A DNA stretch of 28,191 nucleotides from Paramicrosporidium saccamoebae KSL3 (lineage: Eukaryota; Fungi; Cryptomycota). A program made the position numbers and the translations under genes. Positions 4,295 through 28,191 of this stretch are shown in pieces. Numbering within the stretch: position 1 is the first letter of the stretch; every line of letters begins with the position of its first letter. The notes beneath the pieces were generated by a model, which saw only the letters and a list, made by a program, of their open reading frames with translations, was not told the origin of the DNA and did not search any database. The DNA lies in the NCBI GenBank assembly GCA_002794465.1, contig MTSL01000161.1, positions 1 through 28,191 on the forward strand, read 5' to 3'.

Positions 4295-5586
4295 TTACTC
4301 ATTTTTGGTCTTTGTACCGAACAATTTGTTGCGCAGCCAGAACTGCCAAACGGGGAAAAGAATGAGGAGAATCACAAGACCTGTCCAAAACCGGATCACA
4401 TAAAGAGGCGCAGGTTGCGGGAACTGATGGCGGCCAAACTTGATGCAAATAAGAGTCTCAATGACAATGACGGCTACTGTGAGCCATGCTTGAGTACCAA
4501 TTTTTTTGCAGTTAGGATCGGTAAAGTACTGATATGCTTCACGAAGTGCTACGGCTCCCATCAAGGCATGCAAAATAATGCGCGCTACATTAATGAAATG
4601 TGCCGGCGGGATCCATAGGAGATATTTGAGATAAAAGGCATTCATTTCGCTTGCCAGGAACTAGAGAATAAGAACGCAAAGGAACTGTTACAAATATGGT
4701 GACAATCAGGACGACACAATACCCTTTGAAACTCTTTGCAGCAGCCCAGTCAAAGGAAACCCAACTGTGAGGGGTAAACTGCCCAAATGTTCTCCTCATC
4801 TTTCCCGACATGCCTGGGATATCCCGGATGCTGCGCCAATTGTAAGTCTTCATTGCCAAATACTTGCAGGTCTTCATCCCGGCCCAAATCCCCAGCCAGT
4901 TACAGATAAGCACGTCCAGAATCCAATGGTCCCACCAGCATTCCGCAAAGTTTGGCAACTGGTGCTGCAAAGAGTACTCCATCACTTCAAACATTACCGA
5001 AACAATCCAGCAGAGCCATTCGTCGCGGAGAATGAGAGCCTTACCGAACCATCCAAAGGTATGGGCGGCCACAAATACATCCAGTTGCTGGTAAATGGAG
5101 GACCATTTGAGTCGACAATCGTCGGCATAGGCTCGCTCTTGCAAGGGAACCCCAAGGGCTGGATCAATGAATGCCACAAGCTTTCGGGCATCATTCAGAT
5201 TTTGGAAAAAGATGTAAATCAAGAACATTAGGTAGATTACAGAGATGGCTTGAACAGCACGCCAAAAGACGGGGTGGGGACGGATAAATGGTCCGTCTCT
5301 CAGCTGAGTCATACCATAAAAGACAAAGAACAAGGCTGCCACAGCAATTCCACTACACATTAACACTCGGTAAGAAAGAGTACCGAACAGAGTTGTAAGA
5401 GGTAGCATGGTCGGCTGTCCCAAAGAGGGCAACATGGAGAAATCCCGCAAGCATTAAGAACAAGACAGTCAAAGTGTGGGGCTGATAGAGAAACCCAATA
5501 GTTGGGTCAATGGGGTCGCGGTAGGTGTACTCATTAAAGTCGAGTTGCGAAACAGGTCGCTTTCTGGGAGACTTTCGAGATTGCAT
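4295..5586 (-). CDS. PTDSS: Base-exchange phosphatidylserine synthase (PTDSS1/2, PSS family); join complement(4295..4660,4692..5352,5384..5586), 409 aa, two 31-nt introns
   Basis: DGPFIRPHPVFWR, YADDC, DVFVAAHTFGWFGKALILRD, FEVMEYSLQHQLPNFAECWWDHWILDVLICN, and SEMNAFYLKYLLWIPPAH after splicing. Summed exons (1230 nt) stay in frame. Confidence 0.93.
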
Positions 5587-5788: not shown

Positions 5789-8700
5789 ATGAGTGCTCCT
5801 CAAAGCAACATGTTGCGTTATCCGTCTCCCGAAAGCATTCGTGCCATCTCTCAGGATAAAACCGGCCGACCCTTGGTCATCCGCGGCCCCAAATCTGAGG
5901 TAGTGCTGTACATTTCGGCAGACCTGTGGAACACTGCGGAGCGCGTACGTGATGATTACAAACTTCGTACCGCCCGCGAGACAATAGTGGAAGAGTATAA
6001 TGAGATGGAATTGTTATTAGCTTTCATGCGACACACTAGGCTTTACGTGTCTATGCACTCGGAAGACTTTCCGATTCGGTCACTGTACAAGCAGCTGTTT
6101 ATGACCCTGCATCTAAAGTACCTTGGGGGCTGCGAGCCGCACTCTTGTATAAAGGAGCAACTGGAAACCCTGGAATTGCGTGACTCTCTTCGGATTTACT
6201 ACGAGGCGTTTGTGGAGCTGCGCGATCATGACAAGTCTGAAGACATTGCGAACTTTTCTCCAAAGTCTGCCCTCTTTGGGGAAGTTAGGGAAGAGCGTGC
6301 AAAACTGCTGTGCGTCTTTGGCGGGCAAGGGAACACTGAAGATTTGCTAGAAGAGCTCGTGGAGCTCGAGTATACTTATCAGCCGCTATGTAGACCATTT
6401 TTGAAAACCGTCTGCCGCAATCTTGTAAATTTGAGTCAGGATCCTGCCGCCATGGAGTATCTTTCCAAGGGATTCGATATTCTACATTGGATTGATGAGC
6501 CTGATTCCAGGCCCCCAAGACAATATCTCTTCTCGGCTGCTGTGAGCCTGCCTCTGGTGGGACTGATTCAGATTCTCAATTACTATATCACTTGCCAGAT
6601 TCTGGGAAAAACTCCCGGACTGCTCCGGGAAAGCTTGACGGCTACTACTGGACATAGCCAAGGCATTGTTTCTGCCTCTGTCATTTCAATGTCGACGACC
6701 GAGGAGGAACTGATGGAGAACACTAATAATGCCCTGCAGATTCTATTTTGGATTGGACTACGATCTATGCAGGAATATCCCGAAGTGACCTTGGATCCCA
6801 AAATCCAAGCTGACTCGACTGCCAACGGAGAGGGCGTTCCCACTCCTATGCTTGCTGTGACAAACCTCACCCTCCAAGATTTACAGACTCAGGTGGATAT
6901 TTCAAACAAATTTTTGGCTCCCACTGAAAAGATTGAAATTTCGCTTCATAATGGACCACGAGCCTTTGTCTGCTCAGGCCCGCCAAAGTCACTCTATGGA
7001 CTGAATTTGCTTTTGCGTAAGCTGAAGGCAGGATCGTCTCTAGACCAGAGCAAGATTCCCTTTTCTGAGCGCAAATTAAAGTTTAGTACCAAATTTTTGC
7101 CAATATCATCGCCATTTCACTGCTCGTACTTGTCAAAGGCCGTTGACAAGATTATGAATGACTTTCAAAGAAACAATTTGAAGCTTTCACCGAGTTTTTT
7201 TTCTATCCCAGTCATTGCCACAGACTCCGGTAGACTATTTAGTGTTTCTTATTCCTAGGATTGCCAATCGACGCTTCCAACAATCTACTGAGAGCTTTGG
7301 TCGAACAGATTTGTATTAGGCCCGTGTATTGGATGGTTGCGATAACGGCCAAACCGACCACGCACATTTTGGACTTTGGACCGGGTCATGCATCAGGAAT
7401 TGGTGCCTTGACGCACAGAAATGTGGACGGATCTGGTGTACAAGTTGTTTTAGCCGGTACTATTGAAACTCCCATTTCGCATCTTCAGTCTCGTCGACAT
7501 TTATTTGGATCATCAGCATCGTCCGTTCGGTATGGGGTCAACTGGGGTGCAAAGTTCCAGCCCAAACTGGTTCACAGTAAGGCTGATGGGAAGATTTATG
7601 TGGATACTCCCTACAGTCGCCTGTTAGGTACGACTGCGTTAGTGGATCTAATTGTGTAGGAAAGCAGCCCATTATGGTTGCTGGAATGACACCATCCACG
7701 GTTGATGGTGACTTTGTTGCAGCATGCATTAACGCGGGGTATCACGTGGAGCTCGCAGGAGGAGGCCACTACAACGAAAAAGCACTCCGCGACAAGGTCA
7801 AGATGATCTCGGCAAAAGTGAGCGCTGGGAGCGGAATAAGTCTCAATGTGCTATTCATCAACCAGCGTCAATGGGGATTCCAATTTCCGCTGGCCCAGGT
7901 TTTAAGAAAAGAGGGCGTCCCGATTGATGGATTCACGGTGGCTGCTGGAGTACCTTCATTAGAGTTGGCTACAGAAATCATTGCGGCCCTCCTTGCTGTT
8001 GGGATTCGTCACGTCTCATTTAAGCCGGGTTCGATTGAAGGAATCATGCAGGTCGTGACGATTGCCAAGCATAACAGTGACTGTCCCATTATTCTCCAAT
8101 GGACCGGAGGAAGGGCAGGTGGCCATCACAGTTATGAAGATTTTTACCAGCCCATCCTGGACGCTTATTCAGCCATTAGATCGTGTGAGAACATTTACCT
8201 AGTAGCTGGGAGCGGGTTTGGAGATGGCGAGGGCACTTTTCCATACATTGATGGATCGTGGAGTCACGAGTTTAATTTTCCGTCCATGCCATTTGATGGT
8301 ATTCTCTTGGGATCACGTATGATGGTTGCCAAGGAAGGCAAGGCATCAAAGACAGTCAAGGAAACCATTGCTTCGGTTGCTGGTGTTGACAATGAGAAAG
8401 AATGGGTAAAGTCCTACAAGGGTCCTGCTGGAGGTGTTGTGACTGTGATATCTGAGCTGGGAGAGCCCATTCATAAGATTGCCACCCGTGGCGTGTTGCT
8501 ATGGAAAGAGCTCGATGAGACAGTATTCAAACTACCCCGAGACAAGCGTTTGGAGTATTTGATGAAACACAAGAGCCGCATAATACAGCGCTTGAATCAG
8601 GACTCTCACAAGGTCTGGTTTGGAAAGCTGGGTTCTGGGGCGGCTGCTGATCTCGACGAAATGACTTATTATGAGGTCCTTGACCGAATGGCCGAGCTAC

Positions 8701-11700
8701 TCTATGTGGCCCATCAAAAGCGCTGGATTGACAAGTCTTATCATAGACTGTTCTTTGACTTTGCCCAACGTGCAGAAGAACGTTTAGCTAACCGTCCTGT
8801 CCCATCTTGTATCCCTAGCAACATTGACTTGAGCCTGAACCCAGACATTGATCCAAAAGAATTTCTCGCACATATGAAGACAAATGCTACCTTTAGTCTT
8901 GATCATTTACTGAGTTCTGATGACCGTCTCTACTTCATTGCTCTCTGTCGTCGTCCTGGACAAAAGCCTGTTCCTTTCGTCCCCCTATTTGATGAGAATT
9001 TTGATAATTGGTTTAAGAAGGACAGTCTGTGGCAATCGGAGGATGTCGATGCAGTTGTGGGCCAAGACGCCCAACGCGTCTGCATTCTTCAAGGGCCGGT
9101 CGCAGTGAAGCATTGCAAAAAGGTGGATGAACCGGTAAAGGTCATACTTGACGGAATCATGGATTTTCACGTGAAAAAGATTCTGGAGACCAAATATGGC
9201 GGGAGTGTCAAGCAGGTGCCGGAAGTACCGTGGTTCGGTAATCTAGGCAATGTTGAATGCAAGGACTTTGCTAGTCTTGGTGCGATTGTAGAGGAGACTT
9301 CATGGGGTAGAACCGTTTCATTGCTCCGCGATGCACCTACACCCGATGAAGGAGAATGGCTAAAGTGTCTAAGTGGTGGAAAAAAGACTTGGCTCTCGGC
9401 ATTGCTATTGAGCGAAAATATAGTCCAAGTTAAGAATGCTATTGCCAACCGTGTTCAAATCGACGAAACTGTTCAGATCAATGACAGTGTGCAAGTCGAT
9501 GGCAGCCTTCAGGCCAAGAGTATCGTTGACAACACTGTCAAAGCCCTGTTTGCTCCACGTGCTGGATATGCATATCACTTGGACAACGCTTGCAAGTCGG
9601 CTCGCATATCATCTAATGGCAAGGATTTGGTGCACGCCGTCTTCAACAATGACATTATCGACATTGATTTATCATATCATGGATCACAGGGACTATCCGT
9701 GCTGAAATTGCAATTCAAGTTTGTCCCAAGCTGCCCGAATTATATGATTCACGAAGTCATGGAGGGACGAAATGATCGGATCAAGCAGTTTTACTGGGGA
9801 CTTTGGTTCCAAACAGAATCTGAGGCTGAATTCAAGTCCACCCTCGACCATGATCCGTTATCCGTGTTGTTCAAATCGGAATCCACTGTCTCTGCTGAGC
9901 TTGTTGGACGGTTCTGTCGAATCGTTGGCAATCATGCTGCTGCATATTCGGACAATACAATTGCCCCTATGGACTTTGCCATCGTCGTGGCTTGGAAGGC
10001 AGTTATCAAATGTTTGTTTCCGTCTAAGATCGATGGCGACTTGTTGAAGCTTGTCCATTTATCAAATCAAATTTCCTATGTAGGTAGCGCAGGCCCCCTG
10101 GTGGCTGGCCAGAAAGTTGAATCAGAAGCACACATCTCCAGCATCAAATGGACGCCTACTGGAAAGATTGTCGAAGTAGAAGCTTTGGCGCGCGTTGCAG
10201 GCAAGTCTATTCTCAAGGTTATCAGCAAGTTTATGTATCGCGGCGTGTTTGATAAGAACGATTTGTACTTTGAAAAGGGAAGCGCACTGTTAAAGAAGCT
10301 CATGATAGCGTCCAGTGAGGATTTAGCCGTCTTGAAATCAAAGAACTGGATCAACTGGACAACTGACAAGGCAATGGACCAAGTGCGAGTTGGCTCTATC
10401 CTTCTCATTGAACTTGACTACTTGCACTTGCAAGATGTCTCTAAGAATGTCTTAAAGGCCATCGAGTGCAATGGAAAGATATTATTAAAGACAGACACTA
10501 AGGAATATTCACTCATCGGAAAGGTGAATTTCCAATCAAAAGAGTCAATGAAGGCCAATCCCATATTGACTTTTTTGGAGCGACACAGTTATCCTTTGGA
10601 GGTTCCCACAATGTTTGGCAGCGGAATTCCGATTGCTGAAGATTCAGAAATAATACTGACTACCAGCAGCACCAACCAAACCTACTCTGACAATTCTGGC
10701 GACCACAACCCAATCCACACTGATCAGCTGATTGCGGATTTTGCCGCTCTGCCTGGCACCATCACTCATGGAATGTGGACCTCTGCAGCGGTCCGATCGG
10801 TGGTGGAAACTTATGCCGCTGAGAACCAGCCACTGCGAGTGCGGGACTATGAAGCAGTTTTTGACGACATGGTCCTGCCCAGTGACAAGCTGCAGGTTCG
10901 ACTATACCATGTGGGAATGAAAGATGGTCGCAAACTTATCAAGATTGAGACTACTAATCAGCAGGGCGTGGTCGTCATGCACGGCGTGGCCGAAGTAGAT
11001 CAGCCGCGCACTGCATTTGTTTTTACCGGACAAGGATCGCAGGAAGTAGGGATGGGAATGGACTTGTACCAGACCTCAAAGATTGCCAAGGATCTGTGGG
11101 ATATGGCTGATGAGCATTTCTTCACGACTTATGGCTTTTCGATTATTGATATTGTCCGAAATAATCCAAAGAATTTGACAGTCCATTTCGGAGGGCCACG
11201 TGGACAGGAAATCAAGGCCAACTACCGATCAATGACTTATGAGACTGTGGATGCCCGTGGAGCCACTAAATCTGTAGCTCTGTTTCCGGGAATCACCGAT
11301 GCTAGTACCTCTCATACATTTTCGTCTCCAAATGGATTACTTTCTGCCACTCAATTTACCCAGCCCGCCCTTACATTGATGGAGAAGGCTGCGTATGAAG
11401 ACATGAAGCAACGTGGATTGGCTGGACCGGAAACCTCTTTTGCTGGCCATAGTCTCGGGGAGTATGCTGCGCTTGCCTCGGTGGGTAACGTCTTGTCCAT
11501 CGAGACACTCTGTGACGTGGTATTCTACCGTGGACTGACTATGCAAGTTGCGGTGGAGAGGGATTCCTTGGGCCGATCAAACTATGGGATGGTGGCGGCT
11601 AATCCCACTCGGGTCGGATCTGGATTCGACGATCATGCACTACGCGAGCTTGTTCCCCTGATAGCCACGACATGTCAAAAACTGCTGGAGATTGTAAATT

Positions 11701-14700
11701 ACAATGTTGAAAACTGGCAATATGTGGTTGCGGGTGAACTCGAAGCCTTGGAGACTTTGACTAGCGTTCTAAACTACATTGCCACGCAAAAGTATGATAT
11801 TCAAAAGTTGATATCAGAGATGGGAATTTCCAAGATTCAAGAAAACTTGAAATTGATGATCAAAGAGGCCTATAACCGTACGATGGATCGCAAGAATACT
11901 AACGGATTCCTTACACTTGATCGCGGCATTGCGACAATCCCACTTGCTGGAATTGATGTGCCATTTCACTCATCGTTTCTACTTGGCGGTGTAAAGTCGT
12001 TTAGAAAGTGTCTGGAAGCCAAGATCAAAACAGTGTCCGTGGATCCCAACATCTTGCGCGGCCATTATATCCCCAATCTCACCGGTGTTCCTTTTGATAC
12101 GTCTCTGGAATACATTAAGCTGGTACTTGAGAGGTGCGATAGTTTGGTTCTGAACGATATTGTCAAGAATTGGAGCAAAGCGCCAAAGAGTGCGGCCGAA
12201 TTACAAATCATTGCAAGATCTATATTGATTGAGCTACTTGCTTTCCAGTTTGCCTCTCCGGTTCGATGGATTGAAACCCAAGATGTCTTGTTCAAATCGC
12301 TCGCAATCGAGAGACTTATTGAAATTGGCCCTACTCCCGTTCTGAGTGGAATGGCTGAACGGACCTTGAAAATCAAGTATCAAGAATACGACGATGCACT
12401 TTACCAGAGCCGCACCCTATGGAGTTATGTAAAGAACAAGTCTGAAATTTATTACGAATACTTGCCAAAGGAAGAAGTGAAAGAAAGCGCCTCTAAGCCC
12501 GCACAGCTCACACGGCCCGCCCAACTAAATGTTGTGCCGAAATCTGCGACCCCAAAAAAGAGACTTGAGTACCCTTATATAGTATTCTGACATTTAGTGA
12601 ACTTCCCTTTGAGGCGGAGGAACTTTTGAGAATTATTGTTGCTTTGAAGACTAAGAAGACTCTGGAAGAAGTTTCTCCGACCAAAAGCATCAAGGATTTG
12701 TCGGGCGGCAAGAGTACACTGCAAAATGAAATTCTGGCCGACCTGCAGAAAGAATTTGGCGAAGGGGTTCCCGATCGTTCAGAGGAATTATCGCTAAAGG
12801 ACCTTGGTGCGCATATCAAGCCTATTTTCACCAAACAACCAGGCAAATTTACCTCCACCTTGCTGGCTAAAATGTTTGCAGGAAAGATGCCTGCTGGTTT
12901 CACCGCTGGCGCTGCCAAAGATTTGCTTGATAAAGAGTTTGGACTAGGGCCAAAGGCAGCTGATCAACTTTTCCTCTTCAGGTAAAACATCTTCCCTTGC
13001 CCATCATACTCATCCTTAGTCTTCACATGGAGCCCACTAGCAGAATTGCTGCTGATGACGCCGCGCGGACATGGCTCCGAGATGCTGCAACAAAATTCTT
13101 CTCATCTCATCAGCTGGATCTGCCGAGCGGTGGCTCACAGGATGGTCAGCAAGAAGTCTCGGTAATTTCCAGTGCAGAGCTCGAAAAGATGCAGTCAAAG
13201 CATAAGAGACTTATCCGCCAGCAAATTGAATTATTTGCCAATTATGTTGAACAAAACTTGCTAGAGTTTCATAATGCCGCTGCGGATAAATCTGAACAGA
13301 TTGCTGCTCTTCAGAAAGATGTCGATCTCTGGCTTGCCGAGTTTGGGCAGGGATTCCAGGATGGCATCCGACCAATGTTCTCATCGCTCAAGACACGTCG
13401 CTACGACTCGTACTGGAATTGGTCTCGTCAAGACGTTTTCATGCTGTACTATGACATTATATTTGGGCGATTGGTCAATGTGGATCGTGATGTCACTGCC
13501 AAATGTCTGCATGTCATGAACCGTTCGTCCCGAGAGCTTGTGGATTTCATGGAATACCACATTTTCAAGTCTCCAAAGGTTGTTAATGACGAAGTCTCTC
13601 TGGAGTCGTATCAACTCTTGAGACAATATGGTGAGATGCTTGTCAGCCAGGTCAAGGAATCGCTGAACCGACCCCCAATGTACAAGGACGTTTCGAGTCA
13701 CACCCGACCTCAAGTGCAGATTTCGTTTGATGGTTCCATCGAGTATAGCGAGATTCGAAGGTCGGGAGTCGGTAGCTTCGAGGCCTATGTCAACGAAATG
13801 CAACAAGGATCCGAACTTTTGGGCAAATCGGGACGGCCTCTGGTCTTTATCCGCGAGCGCTCCCAAGAGGACCATAACCAATGGACGTTTAGTGACCTCA
13901 AGACCAAAGTGTACATGGCTGCCATTTCCGACATGGCAAGCAATGGTGTCTCATATGAAGGCAAGACTGCATTGTTGACGGGATGTGGCAAGGGGTCCAT
14001 TGGATGCGAAGTACTAAAGGGATTGCTCTCGGGTGGAGCAAAGGTGGTTGTGACAACATCGTCCTTTACCCGAGGCACTGTGGATTATTTCCGGTCCATT
14101 TATGAAAGCCATGGTGCCCGATCAAGCTGTCTCATTATTGCGCCATTCAACCAAGCATCCCTCCGAGATATTGAGTCGCTGATCGAGTACATTTACAATC
14201 AAGATGGCAGCAAGGGACTTGGCTGGGACCTGGACTATATTGTCCCATTTGCAGCGATCCCGGAGAACGGAAGAGAAATGACCGACATTGATTACAAGTC
14301 GGAACTAGCTCATCGCATCATGTTGACCAATGTGCTGCGTCTGGCTGGATTGGTGGCCAAGGCCAAGAAGGATCGTCGCATTGAAACTAGGCCTGCCCAA
14401 GTGGTGCTTCCCCTCTCCCCTAACCATGGTATATTTGGAGGTGATGGCTTGTATGCAGAATCCAAGCTTGGATTGGAGACTTTATTTAATCGTTGGAGTT
14501 CTGAGAGTTGGGGAGATTATCTGTCCATTGTAGGAGCGGTAATTGGATGGACCCGTGGAACAGGCTTGATGAATGAGAATAACATGATTGCGGAAGCTAT
14601 GGAACGGGCTGGACTGCGTACGTTTTCGTCCAACGAGATGGCCTTTAATATCCTTGGTCTGATGCACCCTCAAATGGTGAGAATGTCTGAAGAGGGACCC

Positions 14701-17621
14701 GTCTATGGAGACCTTAACGGCGGCTTGGACGTCATAAAGAATCTTGCGCAGTTCACCAAGGATATACGACAAAAGATGACGGATGGTGCCCAGATCAGAC
14801 GGGCGCTAGCTAAGGAGCGCCTGATGGAGGCATCTTTGGAAGTCAATCCTGTCGAGCGTGTCCCTACTGTTAAACCTCGCGCCAATATGGAGTTTAAATA
14901 TCCCAAACTGTCTACTGTCAAGACTGACAAGGTGTTTGCTGATCTGCTGGATCTTTCCCATGTTGTGGTCGTGACAGGGTTTTCTGAAGTGGGTCCGTGG
15001 GGCAATAGCCGCACTCGCTGGGAGATGGAGGCTGAAGGTGAACTTTCCCTGGAAGGATGTATTGAGATGGCCTGGATAATGGGACTCGTAAAATATCACA
15101 ATGGCGTTGACACGGCGGGAAAGGTGTACGCTGGATGGGTTGATGCCAAGAGTGGTGAGCCTGTGCAAGACTATGATATCAAGCCCAAATATGAGAAGCA
15201 AATCTTGGAGCATTCAGGAATCCGTTTCGTGGAGCCAGAACTGTTCAACGGATACGATCCCAACAAGAAGCATCTCAGCCAGGAGATTGTCATTGACTAC
15301 GACATGGTTCCGTTTGAGGCTAGCAAGGAGGAAGCGGACCAGTTCAAGCTGATGCACGGGGAAATGGTTGATGTTTACCAAAATGACAATGGAAGCTGGA
15401 ACATTAGATTGAAACGTGGCGCTATAATTTATGTTCCCAAGGCGCTACGGTTTGACCGTCTGGTTGCGGGCCAGATTCCCACGGGATGGAATGCCGAACG
15501 TTATGGGATCCCCAAGGATATCGTCCAGCAGGTCGATCCCCTCACTCTGTACACTCTCGTGGCTACGGTGGAGGCTCTTGTCTCGGCAGGCATCACTGAT
15601 CCCTACGAGTTTTATCAATATGTCCATGTTTCGGAGGTTGGAAACACATCAGGTGGTGGTGAAGGTGGGATGGTCAGTAATCGGGGCATTTTCCTAAATC
15701 GTTTCCTTGATAAGCCAACTCAAGCTGATGTTCTCCAGGAATGCTTCATCAATACTATGCCTGCCTGGGTAAATCTGCTATTGTTGAGCTCATCGGGTCC
15801 CATCAAGACGCCCGTGGGTGCCTGTGCAACCGCAGTGGAATCGGTGGAAATTGGAGTGCAGACAATTTTGGATGGAAAAGCACGAGTGGTAATTGTCGGG
15901 GGCTACGATGATTTCCAGGAAGAGAGTTCCTATGAATTCGCCCAGATGAAGGCAACAAGTAACACTGTGGATGAGATGGCCAAGGGACGCCAGCCCGATG
16001 AAATGTCGCGTCCCACGACGACCAGCAGAGGCGGTTTTATGGAGTCGCAGGGTTCAGGGATACAGATTTTAATGACGGCCGAATTAGCCTTGCAGATGGG
16101 ATGTCCAATTTATGGCATTGTTGCACTGACAAACACCGCCACTGACAAGGAGGGAAGGTCGATTCCAGCGCCTGGCCAGGGAATCCTTACCACAGCTCGC
16201 TCGGTACGCCCACTGGGATACAAGCCTAGAATTCTCGACGTTAAACATCGCCATGCTCAGTTAATGAAAGCACAACAGACGATTAAAGAATGGTTCGCAG
16301 ATGAAGTCAAGGCACTACATGAGGAGGCCGAGATGATTGGAGACGAGACTGAGCGCAAATTGTTCATGTCCAGTAGATCTAAAGACATTGAGCTCGAATG
16401 TGCACAAAGGGAAAAGAAGGAAAAGGTATTGTGGGGATTCGATTTCTGGAAACAAGACAGCCGCATATCTCCCATAGAAGGCGCCTTGGCAGTGTATGGC
16501 TTGGACATTGACGACATTGGGGTAGCCTCATTCCATGGAACGGGCACCAAGGCAAACGACATAAACGAATCAGAGGTGATGAACAAGCAGTTGAAGCACC
16601 TGGGCCGATCCAAAGGCAATCTTATGCCCTGTGTGTTCCAAAAGTATCTTACGGGACATCCCAAAGGCGCAGCAGCAGCGTGGATGCTAAACGGGTATGA
16701 TATAAATAGTCTTTACTGACATTTAGAGCATTGCAAATTTTGAACACGGGAATAATCCCTGGAAATCGGAATGCCGATAACATTGACGAAAAGTTGACCG
16801 ATTTCAACTGTTTACTCTTCCTGAGCCGCACAATTCGCACCACCGGCATTAGAGCGGCCATTCTGAAGAGCTTTGGATTTGGACAGGTTGGAGGCGAGGT
16901 CTTGGTGATTCATCCCGACTATCTCTTCCGGGCCATTGATCAGGCTGTGGCAAGGGAATACGTCGAAAAGCGGGTAAAGAGACAGGCCAAGACTTTCCGG
17001 TATTTGCAAGATTCGTTGATCGGAGTGGCCCCACTGGTGCAGGTGAAGAATGAGCCGCCATATTCGGCCGACTTGGAATCAAGTGTTTATCTTAATCCCG
17101 CTGCAAGGGCAGAGTATGATGCGGCCAAGAACAGCTGGACATTCAAGGCGGCATCTATGGAGAAGACAGAGGCGGAAGCCTTATTTGACACCAAGCCGGA
17201 TGGGATAAGCGCCATGGTCCAAGCGACGCTCTCCACTGTAAGCAATGTGTGTGGAGTTGGAGTGGATGTGCAGTTAGTGTCGGAAATCAACATTGATGAC
17301 GAGACATTCCTCCAACGCAACTTTACCGAGGCGGAGCGTCAATACTGCGCCAAGCAGCCCGACGCCAAGGCCAGTTTTGCAGGTCGATGGGCTGCCAAGG
17401 AATCAGTGCTCAAGGCCCTTTGTAATGCCTCTGATCGTCGACCCGATTGGCTGGAGGGGGCGGGCGGAGCCTTGTGTGGAATAGAGATTATGCCGGATGC
17501 TTCTGGCGCGCCCACAGTCCTCTTTGGGGGGAATTTGGCGGGAAAGATATCTGCAGCACCAAAGGTCAGCATTAGCCACTCTGGAGCATACGCAGTCGCA
17601 ATTGCCGTTATTACTAAATAA
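5789..17621 (+). CDS. FAS: Single-chain fungal type I fatty acid synthase (fused beta+alpha: AT-ER-DH-MPT-ACP-KR-KS-PPT); join(5789..7229,7259..7627,7660..12568,12598..12981,13020..16694,16727..17621), 3,890 aa
   Basis: Six track ORFs are joined in frame by five introns of 29, 32, 29, 38 and 32 nt (11,673 coding nt). Motifs: AT GHSQG, ER GGRAGGHHS, DH DHNPIH, MPT GHSLGEY and PFHS, ACP GGKSTLQNE, KR TGCGKGSIG and YAESK, KS PVGACATA, FHGTGT and GHPKGAA, PPT GVGVD, WAAKES and SISHS. Confidence 0.95.
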
Positions 17622-17671: not shown

Positions 17672-18395
17672 TTACAGAGTCATAAGATTACCTTGGGCCT
17701 CGGGGAATGGGTTTGACAGCTTTGGAGGGGCGCTCAGCTGGATCGACTGATGCTCTGGACTGGCACTGATCGCATCCTCCACCTCCATTTCGCTCTCATT
17801 GTCCTCATCTAACTCTTCACCATCCAACATCCCAGCTTCTCCCTTGGGCGCCTCCAATTCGTCACAGCCATCCCACCTAATTGGAAACCTCGTCACCCTC
17901 GGCTTATCGGCGAGAATATTCCTCAGCAGCTTGCCTATCACTGGCACTGCAGGCGGCTCTGCCCTCAGCTCCTCCTCCTCGTACTCGTTATTCACATAGT
18001 ATCCGACGCGCACAAACTCTTGTCCACGATAGCCGCAGGTGATGAGGACGACGGTGACGCCGGTAATGTCTGTGGCGGGGATGAGCGACGGATTCGGTGC
18101 GTCAGCCTACAGTTGGGATTCTGTGTCAGAATGGATTACCTGGTAGACAAACTTGTTGACACCCACGGGAACGGGTCCTACCATGATGCAGTCGAGGGTC
18201 TGGTCGTATTGTTCGTCTTCCGCACTGCCCACATACACCACCTTCCATTCCAAGTCTAAATCGTTCAGAATAGTGCTGCAAGGTACCGTCCTGCAGGGCA
18301 CTGGTACATTCAAAAGTAATTTCAAATTGGAATGGGTTGGTAAACCGGGTCGGGTTGTCGAGGACCTGGATGTTGAGGATATTGACGATGCTCAT
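17672..18395 (-). CDS. ASF1: Histone H3-H4 chaperone Asf1; join complement(17672..18106,18140..18255,18287..18395), 219 aa, introns of 31 and 33 nt
   Basis: [26 protein letters not shown]...LQD|[28 protein letters not shown]...F..Q|ADAP...[25 protein letters not shown], followed by an acidic tail. Confidence 0.96.
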
Positions 18396-18412
18396 GGGCT
18401 GGCGCCTGGTCA

Positions 18413-18945
18413 ATGGTATGCGCGTATATTATGGCTGATTGGTAGGCAAAGGGTTCGGCAAAAAAGATACATGCGGCCAACGCTACGGTGCTCCGTAGAT
18501 TGCGTTTATTTATGCTAATCTCTACTGTAATTCTGGAGGGCTGGTTGAGACTGTAGGCATTGTTCCTGTTGGGAAATGTGGCGTTTGTCAAGAGCATCCA
18601 TGTAAAGTCGCTGGTTGCCTATGGAGTCAGTCAGACTGTTTCTTTGCTGTTCTACCTCACACTTTCCGGTATGGCCGCCTCAAAGATGGTCAATGGTCGG
18701 GTGGAAGAGTCGGGTTCTGACCTGGACGCTTCTGGTCTCCACCAGTATTCGCACATGATGTTTTAATTGTAGTTACATGATGGATTACATTTACATCTGC
18801 AGCATGGTACATGCCTTTGGTGGGTGTACCGTAAAGGCGTGGATGCTGTTTTGGCTGGTAAGCATGGTTTGGGTCAGGATTGTTGACAAAGTAGTTTCCT
18901 ATCTATGGAATGTTCAAGCTTTTGCAATATCTATCCCGTCGATAA
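18413..18945 (+). CDS. TMEM208: TMEM208/Snd2 (DUF788) ER-targeting membrane protein; join(18413..18415,18446..18526,18557..18744,18773..18857,18895..18945), 135 aa, ATG-only first exon
   Basis: The spliced product MAKGSAKKIHAANATVLRRLRLFM...SGSDLDASGLHHYMMDYIYI...WMLFWLFPIYGMFKL matches the family pattern (A.K...N; G.DL...GL..Y..D.IY; W..P.Y..KL). Four introns of 30, 30, 28 and 37 nt, all GTA...TAG; intron 2 is 3n and ends in an in-frame stop. Confidence 0.82.
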
Positions 18946-19058: not shown

Positions 19059-19570
19059 ATGCGATGGTGGTGGGCAGTCTTGCTTGCATGGCCCGCCACA
19101 GTCCCCCGAGTCCCCGCCGAAACTCATCTTTGTAGACTTTTATATTGGCTGACTGTCTAGTTGAGCTGCCAATGACCAGATTAATCGGTCTCAATGTTCC
19201 CATCTCTGATGGCTCGCTGTACAAGGTATTGCGACTTGGTGCTACCCACGCGGCCGAACTGCGGCTCAATCGTATTTTCTGCGAAAAACCTGTCCGACTC
19301 TGCGTCTGGCGTGAGGGGGCAGTGTTTCTAGATGTTGAAAAGCTCGTCTTTGAGAAAGGTTGGGAGGGCGAGGTACGGGTGTGGGCAGAGGTGGAGGGTG
19401 TTTCAAGGCTGGGCAAGATTGAGGGTATGGCAAGGGCGGCAGCAGTGTTTGAGCGCACTTTTTGGGGTATTCCCAGTAGTTGTCTGCCGATCATCCTACT
19501 GATCATACTCTGTCTGGCCGCAATTCCCATCTTGACATTTAAGTATTTGATTTTTCTGTCTCCGTTGTGA
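19059..19570 (+). CDS. Small type I membrane protein (putative signal peptide, lumenal domain, C-terminal TM); needs one intron ending at 19135 (donor 19101 or 19110)
   Basis: The ORF from 19136 contains LDVEKLVF...EVEGV...FWGIP followed by a hydrophobic helix (CLPIILLIILCLAAIPIL). This recalls a plant/fungal uncharacterised family (LNTEKLIF...EPEGV...LLGIP). The upstream MRWWWAVLLAWPAT looks like a signal peptide. The 5' model is uncertain. Confidence 0.55.
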
Positions 19571-24988: not shown

Positions 24989-25346
24989 TTATAGGTCTAC
25001 AATCATCCACACGAGCATGGAATAGAGGGATACCATTATACAGTTTTATATATAGTATAGCTATCTAGCGGAATGCAGCGTCATGCAGCGTTGCCATAGG
25101 ACTAACCACTGAACCGAAAGAAATTTGATTTTTTCATTTAGTGAAATGTCACCACATTGACGAGCACTGTAGCCTACGGCGCATGAAGCGCAGACTTGAG
25201 TGTAGATATAGTGGCGAGGTATCTTCTAGGCCCCATGGCGTTCGTACAGCTGCAGAAGCCGCACGGTTCGCCACAGAGGCCATCGAAAGTTGTCCCTACC
25301 ACCCTGGCCGCCCATTTAACTGCGAAATTTGGCGCCTCTCGGTGGG

Positions 25347-26661
<1,315 letters not shown>

Positions 26662-27126
26662 ACATCTCTGCTCTGTGTATTGAAAATTATTAATAGCCTG
26701 CATTGCAATTGGACTAATTGTAAAGTTGGCAGTAAGTAAAGACTCCATTATTAGTCTATTATATACAAGTTGAAATTCTGGGTTAGTAAAATCAGGATAC
26801 CAATATATATATGATGTAGAGGTACAACCAGAGTCTAAAATCTCCAATTGTCGAAATCCTTTGCTATAGAATTTCAAAGGCCGCTTCTTGCGCGGATTGG
26901 TGCATAGTTTCCTACGGTTATTCAGATTCTATTGGTTTGATCAGAACGAAACTTGTTTCAATCTCATTGGATCTCTGGCTCATTGGTGCGCGTCATCTAT
27001 TATCTTTCGTGATTGGATAGCAGCAGGACGTATGTCCCATTCGATTGGTGCTGCCCATTCGGCACCTATTTGAAACCCGTTTCGCCAATGCGATAAGTAT
27101 CCCCACTGCACACACACAGACTCATA

Positions 27127-27876
27127 ATGCCCAAGATTGATGCACACTATATGCGAAGGGTGGCGGCCGAATTCCTGGTCACCTATCTCTTCATCTTTAC
27201 CATCTGCTGCAACGGCTTGAACGATGCCCGCAGCGGTGGTGTGGGCGGAGACGTGAGAAGCGGTGTGTCTACTGGCTTTGCCGCGGTGGCCCTGATCTAC
27301 TGCTTTGGGGGATTGAGCGGTGCTCATTTCAATCCAGCTGTTACGGTTGGCGCAATGGTTGGCCAAAAGATGGATTTCCTCACTGGGTCTATATACATTG
27401 GAGTACAGACGCTGGCAGGGATGGCAGCGGTCGCTTCATTGATTGCCTTGTTCCCCGAGGCGAAGGGTGCCACGCTCAAGGCGCTTCAACTGAGTGTTCC
27501 GGAGGGTGTAAGCACTTGGCAAGTCGTTGCTATGGAGTTTGTGCTGTCATTCATGCTGGTCATGGTCATCTACGGATCTGCCATGGGCCTCAAGACGGTT
27601 ATCACTGACACTGATATTGAGTCTCAGGATGAAAAGGCCGAGTTGATCTCCATCAACAAGATGCGCCTTAACTTTGCTCCGATTGCCATTGGTCTTGCAC
27701 TCGGATACCTCTGTTTTTTGGGAGGCTCTATCTCTGGTGGAGCCTTCAATCCTTCCAGAGCAACAGCCCCCGTTATTCTGGAGGGCAAGTTTACTGGACT
27801 CTGGATGTACTGGATTGGAGATTGTGCCGGAGGAGCCGCCGCGGCCCTCGTGTACAACTATGTGCTGACAAACTGA
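27127..27876 (+). CDS. Aquaporin (MIP family), NPA/NPS motifs, long acidic loop D
   Basis: AEFLVTYLFIF, SGAHFNPAVT, MEFVLSFMLV, APIAIGLALG, GGAFNPSRA; six TM segments. Confidence 0.95.
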   Translation: MPKIDAHYMRRVAAEFLVTYLFIFTICCNGLNDARSGGVGGDVRSGVSTGFAAVALIYCFGGLSGAHFNPAVTVGAMVGQKMDFLTGSIYIGVQTLAGMAAVASLIALFPEAKGATLKALQLSVPEGVSTWQVVAMEFVLSFMLVMVIYGSAMGLKTVITDTDIESQDEKAELISINKMRLNFAPIAIGLALGYLCFLGGSISGGAFNPSRATAPVILEGKFTGLWMYWIGDCAGGAAAALVYNYVLTN

Positions 27877-27918
27877 GTGTAGATAAACCTGTAAATAAAT
27901 TTCAGTCCCAAATTCAAA

Positions 27919-27965: not shown

Positions 27966-28191
27966 AAAAGTAGTTTCAAAGTCGAGACGCTAGTGACCAT
28001 AAAGGTTTTGGATTTAGAATGAACAGAGGCAATTCTTAATCAAGACACTGATTGGACATTGAGGGCAATGCATAATTCATTAGTATTAACGCATGATTGT
28101 ACGGATTCGTGGAAAGACCGGTGTGGCCAGGATAGAGTTGTCTGAGACGACGTCTTTGCAACAACTTTACGAGGCTACGAGTAGGGAATCA

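Follow-up and report, generated by a model that had tools for sequence, protein, structure and literature searches.

The window analysed here is a stretch of 28,191 nucleotides whose positions 1-28191 carry the same coordinates in record GCA_002794465.1 MTSL01000161.1 (33,980 nt) of Paramicrosporidium saccamoebae. This organism lives as an intranuclear parasite in Saccamoeba and has a genome of 7.3 Mb with 3,750 predicted genes, annotated by MAKER and Augustus trained on Rhizopus (PMC5701793); it is a rozellid sister lineage of Microsporidia, not a microsporidian itself. Stranded poly(A) RNA-seq of P. saccamoebae was produced by Quandt et al., 2017. The minus-strand gene considered here is ASF1, which encodes a histone chaperone (best match to the ASF1 protein query, PSACC_02445 of P. 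saccamoebae). Its spliced model matched PF04729 over the full-length core domain from Met1 (E = 3.9e-73, 244.9 bits, profile 1-154/154), and identity to fungal and animal ASF1 was 60-74%. An in-frame TAA lies at 18431-18429, 12 codons upstream of the start, with no intervening ATG, so that the ASF1 start is secure.

Head-to-head with ASF1, a plus-strand gene starts at 18413 (Table 1). Its spliced model encodes 135 aa with the N-terminus MAKGSAKKIH and matched PF05620 TMEM208_SND2 (E = 5.4e-29, 101.6 bits; cut-off 22.9), residues 1-131 aligning to profile positions 1-133 (of 167), i.e. from profile position 1. Hydrophobic stretches are visible in the model. The protein resembles the TMEM208/Snd2 family (PF05620) in matching from the first profile position and in being small, hydrophobic and of similar length, but it is divergent. 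A word-index protein search with the P. saccamoebae protein as sole query returned no homologue, a PDB search gave no match, and three relatives only were found (L009, L011 and L002), all uncultured. TMEM208/Snd2 is a component of SRP-independent targeting to the ER. We conclude that the plus-strand gene at 18413 is TMEM208/SND2, a predicted membrane protein and ER-targeting component. An earlier note on this DNA had named both genes and placed their starts at CAT 18393-18395 and ATG 18413-18415; the Pfam matches of the two spliced models bear out the names, and the positions, with 17 nt between them, are exact to the base.

Table 1. Features of the divergent ASF1-TMEM208/SND2 locus and of the recurrent 8-mer in the window
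Feature	Position	Strand	Remarks
ASF1 gene	17672..18395	-	219 aa when spliced
ASF1 exons	18395-18287, 18255-18140, 18106-17672	-	spliced model
ASF1 introns	18286-18256 (31 nt), 18139-18107 (33 nt)	-	spliced model
ASF1 start codon	18393..18395	-	CAT on plus strand; N-terminus MSIVNILN common to homologues
Three plus-strand ATGs	18370, 18388, 18394 (18370..18396)	+	inside ASF1 codons, out of frame with TMEM208
Spacer between start codons, GGGCTGGCGCCTGGTCA	18396..18412	.	17 nt
TMEM208/SND2 exon 1, predicted	18413..18415	+	start codon alone; splice model, Pfam, comparison with L009 and L011
TMEM208 intron 1, predicted	18416..18445	+	30 nt, phase 0, GTATGC...CTGAT...TAG
A/T octamer TATATTAT (ATAATATA on ASF1 strand)	18425..18432	.	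30-37 nt upstream of ASF1 ATG
CCAATCAG, candidate CCAAT box	18435..18442	-	40-47 nt upstream of ASF1 ATG
CTGAT, putative branch point	18435-18439, A 18438	+	complement of CCAATCAG
TMEM208 exon 2 (AKGSAKKIHAANATVLRRLRLFMLIST)	18446..18526	+	codon comparison with L009
TMEM208 intron 2	18527-18556	+	30 nt
TMEM208 exon 3	18557-18744	+	
TMEM208 intron 3	18745-18772	+	28 nt
TMEM208 exon 4	18773-18857	+	
TMEM208 intron 4	18858-18894	+	37 nt
TMEM208 exon 5	18895-18945	+	stop included
CCAATCAG copy, ORF372			56-63 nt upstream of ORF372
CCAATCAG copy, ASF1			40-47 nt upstream of ASF1
CCAATCAG copy, DnaJ			87-94 nt upstream of DnaJ
CCAATCAG copy, NPL4		antisense	38-45 nt upstream of unannotated NPL4 N-terminal exon (ATG 28093)

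In the model adopted here TMEM208 would be expressed from the ATG at 18413-18415 and spliced over 18416-18445 to the GCA at 18446, across an intron (GTATGCGCGTATATTATGGCTGATTGGTAG) of the form GTATGC...CTGATTGGTAG that ends in a TAG sharing the frame of the downstream ORF. The N-terminal residues that depend on this splice belong to the family profile: the first 33 aa alone scored 27.5 bits against PF05620 (cut-off 22.9; profile 1-33). Comparative evidence came from L009, a 130-kb JGI metagenome contig located by a search with exon 3 (protein P0121), which shares with P. saccamoebae the gene order FAS-ASF1-TMEM208-...-Exo_endo_phos-DnaJ and has its ASF1 start at 4722 (-) and its TMEM208 start at 4835 (+). 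There, ATG/GTAT at 4835-4838 opens a 38-nt intron (GTAT...TTTAG) that is followed by GCAAAAGGCTCG, giving M/AKGSAKRIH (slash, exon junction), and all four intron positions as well as the sizes of exons 2, 3 and 4 are the same as in P. saccamoebae. Among the 27 codons of exon 2, 6 are identical between the two, 15 differ by synonymous changes only and 6 are non-synonymous; the three codon positions have identities of 0.81/0.81/0.33, and stops interrupt the other frames. By this signature exon 2 is predicted to be coding from its first codon. The N-terminal 15 residues are the best conserved of the protein (14/15 identical to L009, against 60% overall).

In the other two relatives the intron is missing. 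L011 has ATGGCAAAGGGA contiguous at the TMEM208 start, its ATGGCAAAGGGATCAGCTAAGCGG encoding MAKGSAKR and continuing as MAKGSAKRIH, and L002 has an ORF (MANAAEKR...) divergent from an intron-less ASF1, likewise without intron 1, that matched TMEM208 profile positions 1-33 (E = 1.8e-4). The site thus holds an intron in one relative and lacks it precisely in two, and from the M-A-K-G N-terminus of the relatives the mature N-terminus should be exactly the one that the splice model predicts. Alignment of the spacer and intron 1 DNA between species gave no usable conservation. Two metagenome scans for further relatives, the first with peptide patterns straddling the splice junctions, found nothing, and the contigs L003-L008, which also bear ASF1, come from no close relative and lack a TMEM208 adjoining ASF1. 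Four independent lines (the L009 intron, the contiguous junction in L011 and L002, the coding signature of exon 2 and the N-terminal Pfam score) indicate that the predicted start-codon intron is conserved and that it is needed for the N-terminus, the latter as the earlier note had proposed with its ATG/GTATGC...TAG model.

The main alternative to this intron is that the 30-nt stretch is not spliced and that TMEM208 starts at ATG 18512 (Met24), the similarity upstream being fortuitous or a relic; a start there had been named beforehand as an observation that would tell against the intron. This ATG is in frame, most of the first hydrophobic segment would remain, and a protein begun at Met24 still scored 70.8 bits against PF05620. 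Relative to the 101.6 bits of the full model, however, ~31 bits are lost, and codons 2-23, which account for them, exceed the Pfam cut-off by themselves. The N-terminal identity of 14/15 to L009 came with DNA changes that are mostly synonymous, and L011 and L002 have an ATG directly before the same TMEM208 residues. The codon equivalent to ATG 18512 in L009 is ATT (Ile), so the rival start does not exist there. Because of this lack of conservation and the cost in Pfam bits, we regard unspliced initiation at 18512 as extremely unlikely.

The predicted start-codon intron was compared with 13 other introns of the window (in FAS, ASF1, TMEM208, PSS and RRP40), namely those required by long or homology-supported ORFs. 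An ab initio intron census by ORF merging was dropped, decoy dinucleotide pairs having matched as often. The fused FAS ORF of 3,890 codons, for example, stays open only with five GTA...TAG introns of 29-38 nt. All 13 are 28-38 nt long, start with GTA and end with TAG, and TMEM208 intron 1 (30 nt, GTATGC...GGTAG) is within the class in both length and boundary consensus. A strict yTRAy motif is present in 7/13, its A lying 6-8 nt from the 3' end in six and 19 nt from it in ASF1 intron 2; the other six have, on a by-eye reading, near-variants at about the same place. In TMEM208 intron 1 the A of CTGAT is 7 nt from the 3' end, and the branch-point reading given to CTGAT before agrees with the 6-8 nt seen in 6/13 other introns. 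By these sequence features TMEM208 intron 1 is typical of the local class and predicted to be U2-type. A composite of ATGGTA, a 24-42-nt stretch ending in TAG with a branch-like motif and an ORF of at least 25 codons was found twice in the window against 0.065 expected per Markov-simulated 28-kb sequence; the pattern at TMEM208 is more than chance. The second occurrence (25036, -) falls between genes, beside a TATA box that precedes DnaJ, and looks fortuitous. DnaJ's own ATGGTA is plain Met-Val codons.

A further possibility is that the acceptor of intron 1 is the next AG (AAG 18449-18451), giving a 36-nt intron and a product MGSAKK..., either as the main or as an alternative form. In P. saccamoebae the reading frame is kept with this acceptor as well, and the branch A would be 13 nt away from the 3' splice site, as is more usual in other eukaryotes. 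Against it, TAG closes every one of the 14 introns examined in the window, and any strict yTRAy near the 3' end has its A at 6-8 nt; the corresponding downstream AG is out of frame in L009, and the contiguous genes of the relatives encode M-A-K-G. Use of the AAG is thus very unlikely, and we retain the TAG at 18443-18445. The TMEM208 introns measure 30/30/28/37 nt in P. saccamoebae versus 38/41/46/38 nt in L009, so that P. saccamoebae would be the more compacted lineage. With 14 uniform 28-38-nt GTA...TAG introns in ~28 kb, P. saccamoebae appears intron-rich.

The divergent orientation of ASF1 and TMEM208, with less than 1 kb between the starts, is kept across the relatives, the ATG-ATG spacer measuring 17 nt in P. 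saccamoebae, 112 nt in L009 and 466 nt in L002. The starts of the remaining divergent pairs in the window are separated by 202 nt (PSS/FAS), 245 nt and 319 nt, which makes the ASF1/TMEM208 pair an outlier. The spacer might be an assembly artefact, an intergenic region collapsed or deleted in the draft: the P. saccamoebae assembly is a metagenome-derived draft, and the spacers of the relatives are much longer. Yet on either side intact in-frame coding sequence reaches the start codon, the intron signals are intact, and the introns too are shortened relative to L009, which makes an artefact extremely unlikely. We therefore take the 17 bp as real. The locus is very probably a conserved divergent ASF1-TMEM208/SND2 pair of the Paramicrosporidium lineage with a 17-bp spacer, an exon 1 consisting of the ATG, a 30-nt intron and overlapping promoters, the intergenic spacer having presumably shrunk to its present size in P. 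saccamoebae.

With 17 bp between the ATGs, the core promoter of each gene would have to overlap the other gene. A TMEM208 transcript begun upstream of 18394 would carry a uORF overlapping the start codon. The three out-of-frame upstream ATGs thus suggest that TMEM208 has a 5'UTR of at most ~18 nt, or else is translated inefficiently; initiation within that distance of the ATG is the probable case, and the TMEM208 promoter would then occupy the opening codons of ASF1. The 76 nt upstream of ASF1 contain no ATG on the minus strand, and the ASF1 leader may therefore extend over exons 1 and 2 and intron 1 of TMEM208. Given this ATG-free stretch together with CCAATCAG (-40 to -47) and the A/T octamer (-30 to -37), the latter a possible TATA-like element to judge from its composition, the ASF1 promoter probably lies in TMEM208 intron 1. 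The two transcripts would then either overlap antisense or carry very short leaders. That the regulatory DNA of each gene lies inside the other, as had been suggested, follows from this geometry and from the pattern of upstream ATGs, and we infer it on those grounds. Short leaders are no general rule in the window, since DnaJ seemingly has its TATA box ~180 nt upstream of the ATG.

On the plus strand, GCTGATTGG at 18434-18442 contains the branch-point motif and reads CCAATCAG at 18442-18435 on the minus strand. At the site CTACCAATCAG, four of five flanking positions fit the NF-Y consensus. Each copy of CCAATCAG in the window (4/4) is placed 38-94 nt ahead of a start codon (Table 1), one of them before the unannotated N-terminal exon of NPL4, which matched UN_NPL4 (E = 3e-4). 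Placement was tested in the 120 nt before each of 12 start codons: CCAATCA was found near starts in 6/10 cases against 0.49 expected (~12-fold, p = 2.5e-6) and CCAAT in 12/78 against 3.8 expected (p = 4e-4), and CCAAT ranked first among its 30 permutations for start-proximal placement. The statistics on CCAATCAG were drawn up post hoc with the ASF1 copy as seed, and they cover 12 start codons only. Across the window CCAAT is not enriched (78 observed, 80 expected); it is its placement that is non-random. Upstream of the aquaporin gene, seven CCAAT motifs cluster within 200 nt. The consensus CCAAT box ~40 bp upstream of ASF1 that the earlier note pointed out gains support from the four start-proximal copies and the ~12-fold enrichment of CCAATCA, and on this sequence evidence ASF1 plausibly has a CCAAT-type promoter element upstream.

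Among the relatives, L002 carries CCAAT in sense orientation 41-45 nt before its ASF1 ATG. L009 intron 1 also contains a CCAAT (4854-4858), 132-136 nt from the ASF1 ATG and with different flanks (CCAATCT); the motif is frequent across L009 (45 observed, 31 expected), and the intronic copy lends weak support for conservation. The single copy of CCAATCAG in L009 lies in coding sequence, leaving the sharing of the extended motif with L009 without support. The CCAAT of L009 intron 1 is not its best branch motif, and the two are separate, so that dual use, if there is any, would be confined to P. saccamoebae.

Such dual use would put one 8-mer (CCAATCAG, with CTGAT in its complement) under two constraints, promoter and branch point; on one strand a transcription factor would recognise it as DNA, and on the other the spliceosome would recognise it as RNA. 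This is the least certain step, and we offer it as possible rather than probable. The overlap of CCAAT and branch point may equally well be coincidental, the 8-mer serving only splicing or only the promoter and ASF1 being driven by other sequences. CTGAT followed by TGG is a modest coincidence (~1 in 64), the CCAAT statistics come from a small post hoc sample, and L009 has its CCAAT and its best branch motif at different places and an extended motif that differs. Against coincidence stand the four exact CCAATCAG copies, all 38-94 nt upstream of starts, the sense CCAAT of L002, almost as far from the ASF1 ATG as in P. saccamoebae, and the branch geometry of TMEM208 intron 1, which is the modal one. 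A wider proposal joins the dual-use reading to the history of the spacer: its collapse (466, 112 and 17 bp) would have put the ASF1 core promoter into TMEM208 intron 1 and the branch point into the CCAAT box, in a genome where ~30-nt introns are pervasive and undescribed. As a whole this proposal is rather unlikely to hold.

The NCBI record has no gene called from ASF1 to window position 19172, and the protein collection has no annotated copy of P. saccamoebae TMEM208, which is thus new to annotation; the spliced products of both the ASF1 and the TMEM208 models are likewise absent from that collection. GenBank PSACC_02445 (ASF1) reads through intron 1 and has a frameshifted middle. The annotation of the 28-kb window thus lacks TMEM208 and has an ASF1 model that is shown to be wrong; in addition, the NPL4 model appears truncated and FAS is of differing length. 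These faults are evidence that the published annotation systematically misses or mishandles ~30-nt introns. A full-text literature search found no paper giving Paramicrosporidium intron lengths, and the word "intron" is absent from the main text of the P. saccamoebae genome paper.

The analysis adds TMEM208/SND2 to the gene catalogue of P. saccamoebae, corrects the ASF1 model, and shows ~30-nt introns, missed by the published annotation, to be the norm in the window. Arguments on gene loss in the fungi-to-Microsporidia transition rest on this catalogue. If ~30-nt introns are pervasive and could not be modelled by the Rhizopus-trained Augustus, both the catalogue and the losses inferred from it need revision. 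The spacers of 466, 112 and 17 bp represent very different compaction in one gene pair, and they suggest how promoters can come to lie inside neighbouring genes. Should the 8-mer indeed have a dual use, it would illustrate, in a compact natural case, how DNA-level and RNA-level codes can overlap.

Close parallels come from Encephalitozoon cuniculi, in which most genes have CCC just before the ATG, 5'UTRs are <7 nt, the S16/L13 genes are head-to-head 35 bp apart, and signals are occasionally inside neighbouring coding sequences (PMC2803860). As in these pairs, the genes are divergent with hardly any spacer, signals are forced into or next to the neighbours, and the ASF1/TMEM208 leaders are probably very short or the transcripts overlapping. 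The ASF1/TMEM208 spacer, with its 17 bp between ATGs, is shorter still than in E. cuniculi, and the microsporidian CCC-like and AAATTT signals are not evident at P. saccamoebae starts. The CCC that had been remarked on before does precede the ASF1 ATG, but it does not hold as a microsporidian-type signal, as only ASF1 has it among the 12 starts in the window (1/12) and L009 ASF1 has TCAA before its ATG and no CCC. The candidate signals here are instead the CCAAT(CAG) box and the A/T octamer, both inside the intron of the partner gene.

Introns near the start codon are known from ribosomal-protein genes of yeast. Microsporidia have miniature introns with an extreme 5' bias (PMC6349667). TMEM208 intron 1 is like both in being a short GT-AG intron after an exon 1 that is little beyond the ATG; TMEM208, however, is no ribosomal-protein gene, and unlike the handful of relic introns in Microsporidia, P. 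saccamoebae has many uniform introns of 28-38 nt. Bidirectional promoters with CCAAT boxes bound by NF-Y are known in animals and fungi, and in typical bidirectional promoters the starts are ~100-1000 bp apart with nucleosome-free DNA between them. The ASF1/TMEM208 locus resembles the CCAAT/NF-Y type in its divergent pair, in an orientation-independent CCAAT near the starts and in a pairing that is kept in relatives, but it leaves no room for two pre-initiation complexes outside the genes. On this comparison, ASF1/TMEM208 would be an extreme but recognisable case of genome compaction, of a kind already known from Microsporidia.

Intron 1 of the histone-chaperone gene ASF1 (31 nt) is left unspliced in the GenBank model PSACC_02445 (window 18107-18395, minus strand), and the resulting read-through frameshifts ~45 residues; the corrected model regains the complete ASF1 domain. 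The fused fatty-acid synthase gene is split by five introns of 29, 32, 29, 38 and 32 nt. Since the NCBI product has 3,836 aa, as against the 3,890 codons found here, some of these introns were probably mishandled in the NCBI model. At the 5' end of NPL4, the N-terminal exon matched UN_NPL4 (E = 3e-4) and OTU1_UBXL (E = 5e-5), and it lies ~300 nt upstream of position 28395, where the NCBI model begins.

Features of the window, with coordinates
Feature	Position	Strand	Remarks
Fatty-acid synthase	5789-17621	plus	one fused gene; 3,890 codons
Intron-like 29-mer	19132-19160	plus	GTAGAC...CTGACTGTCTAG; just upstream of 132-aa ORF
132-aa ORF	19172-19570	plus	annotated; function unknown; conserved in L009
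CCAAT/ATTGG cluster	26893-27089		n = 7; <=200 nt upstream of aquaporin (MIP) start 27127
Intron-like 31-mer	27852-27882	plus	GTACAAC...CTGAGTGTAG; overlaps annotated MIP stop
NPL4 N-terminal exon	28093-28191	plus	unannotated; encodes MIVRIRGKTGVARIELSE...; matches UN_NPL4, OTU1_UBXL

Two further annotated models have intron-like segments at or near one end. For the aquaporin (MIP) gene, the 31-mer overlaps the stop as annotated, and the C-terminus of the present model may for this reason be wrong. The position of the 29-mer suggests that the gene of the 132-aa ORF may possess an additional 5' exon; this ORF has a same-strand counterpart in L009, a contig from a relative described below (tblastx, E = 2e-21). 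Three of the seven CCAAT/ATTGG motifs upstream of the MIP gene read ATTGGTGC, and a repeat finder detected no tandem repeat in the cluster.

In the intergenic DNA upstream of DnaJ, an ATGGTA on the minus strand precedes an intron-like 37-mer (25036-24997). This combination is adjoined by a TATATATAAAA box (25040-25055) ~180 nt upstream of DnaJ. The ATGGTA and 37-mer combination is probably fortuitous. The arrangement suggests a long leader for DnaJ, in contrast to the head-to-head ASF1/TMEM208 pair.

Another relative, represented by L011 (ENA ERZ27247376, 1-566), lacks introns 1-3 of TMEM208 and retains a ~64-nt insert at the intron-4 site; L011 derives either from an intron-poor genome or from a partly spliced transcript assembly. 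L009, a 130-kb contig (JGI 3300037657, Ga0401392_0000501), belongs to a close relative of P. saccamoebae that is uncultured, and a 2.2-kb contig from sample 3300037044 (L010) is identical to L009. Gene order is common to L009 (1-10189) and P. saccamoebae over at least 10 kb, with longer introns and spacers in L009, which makes a helpful comparison genome in re-annotation.
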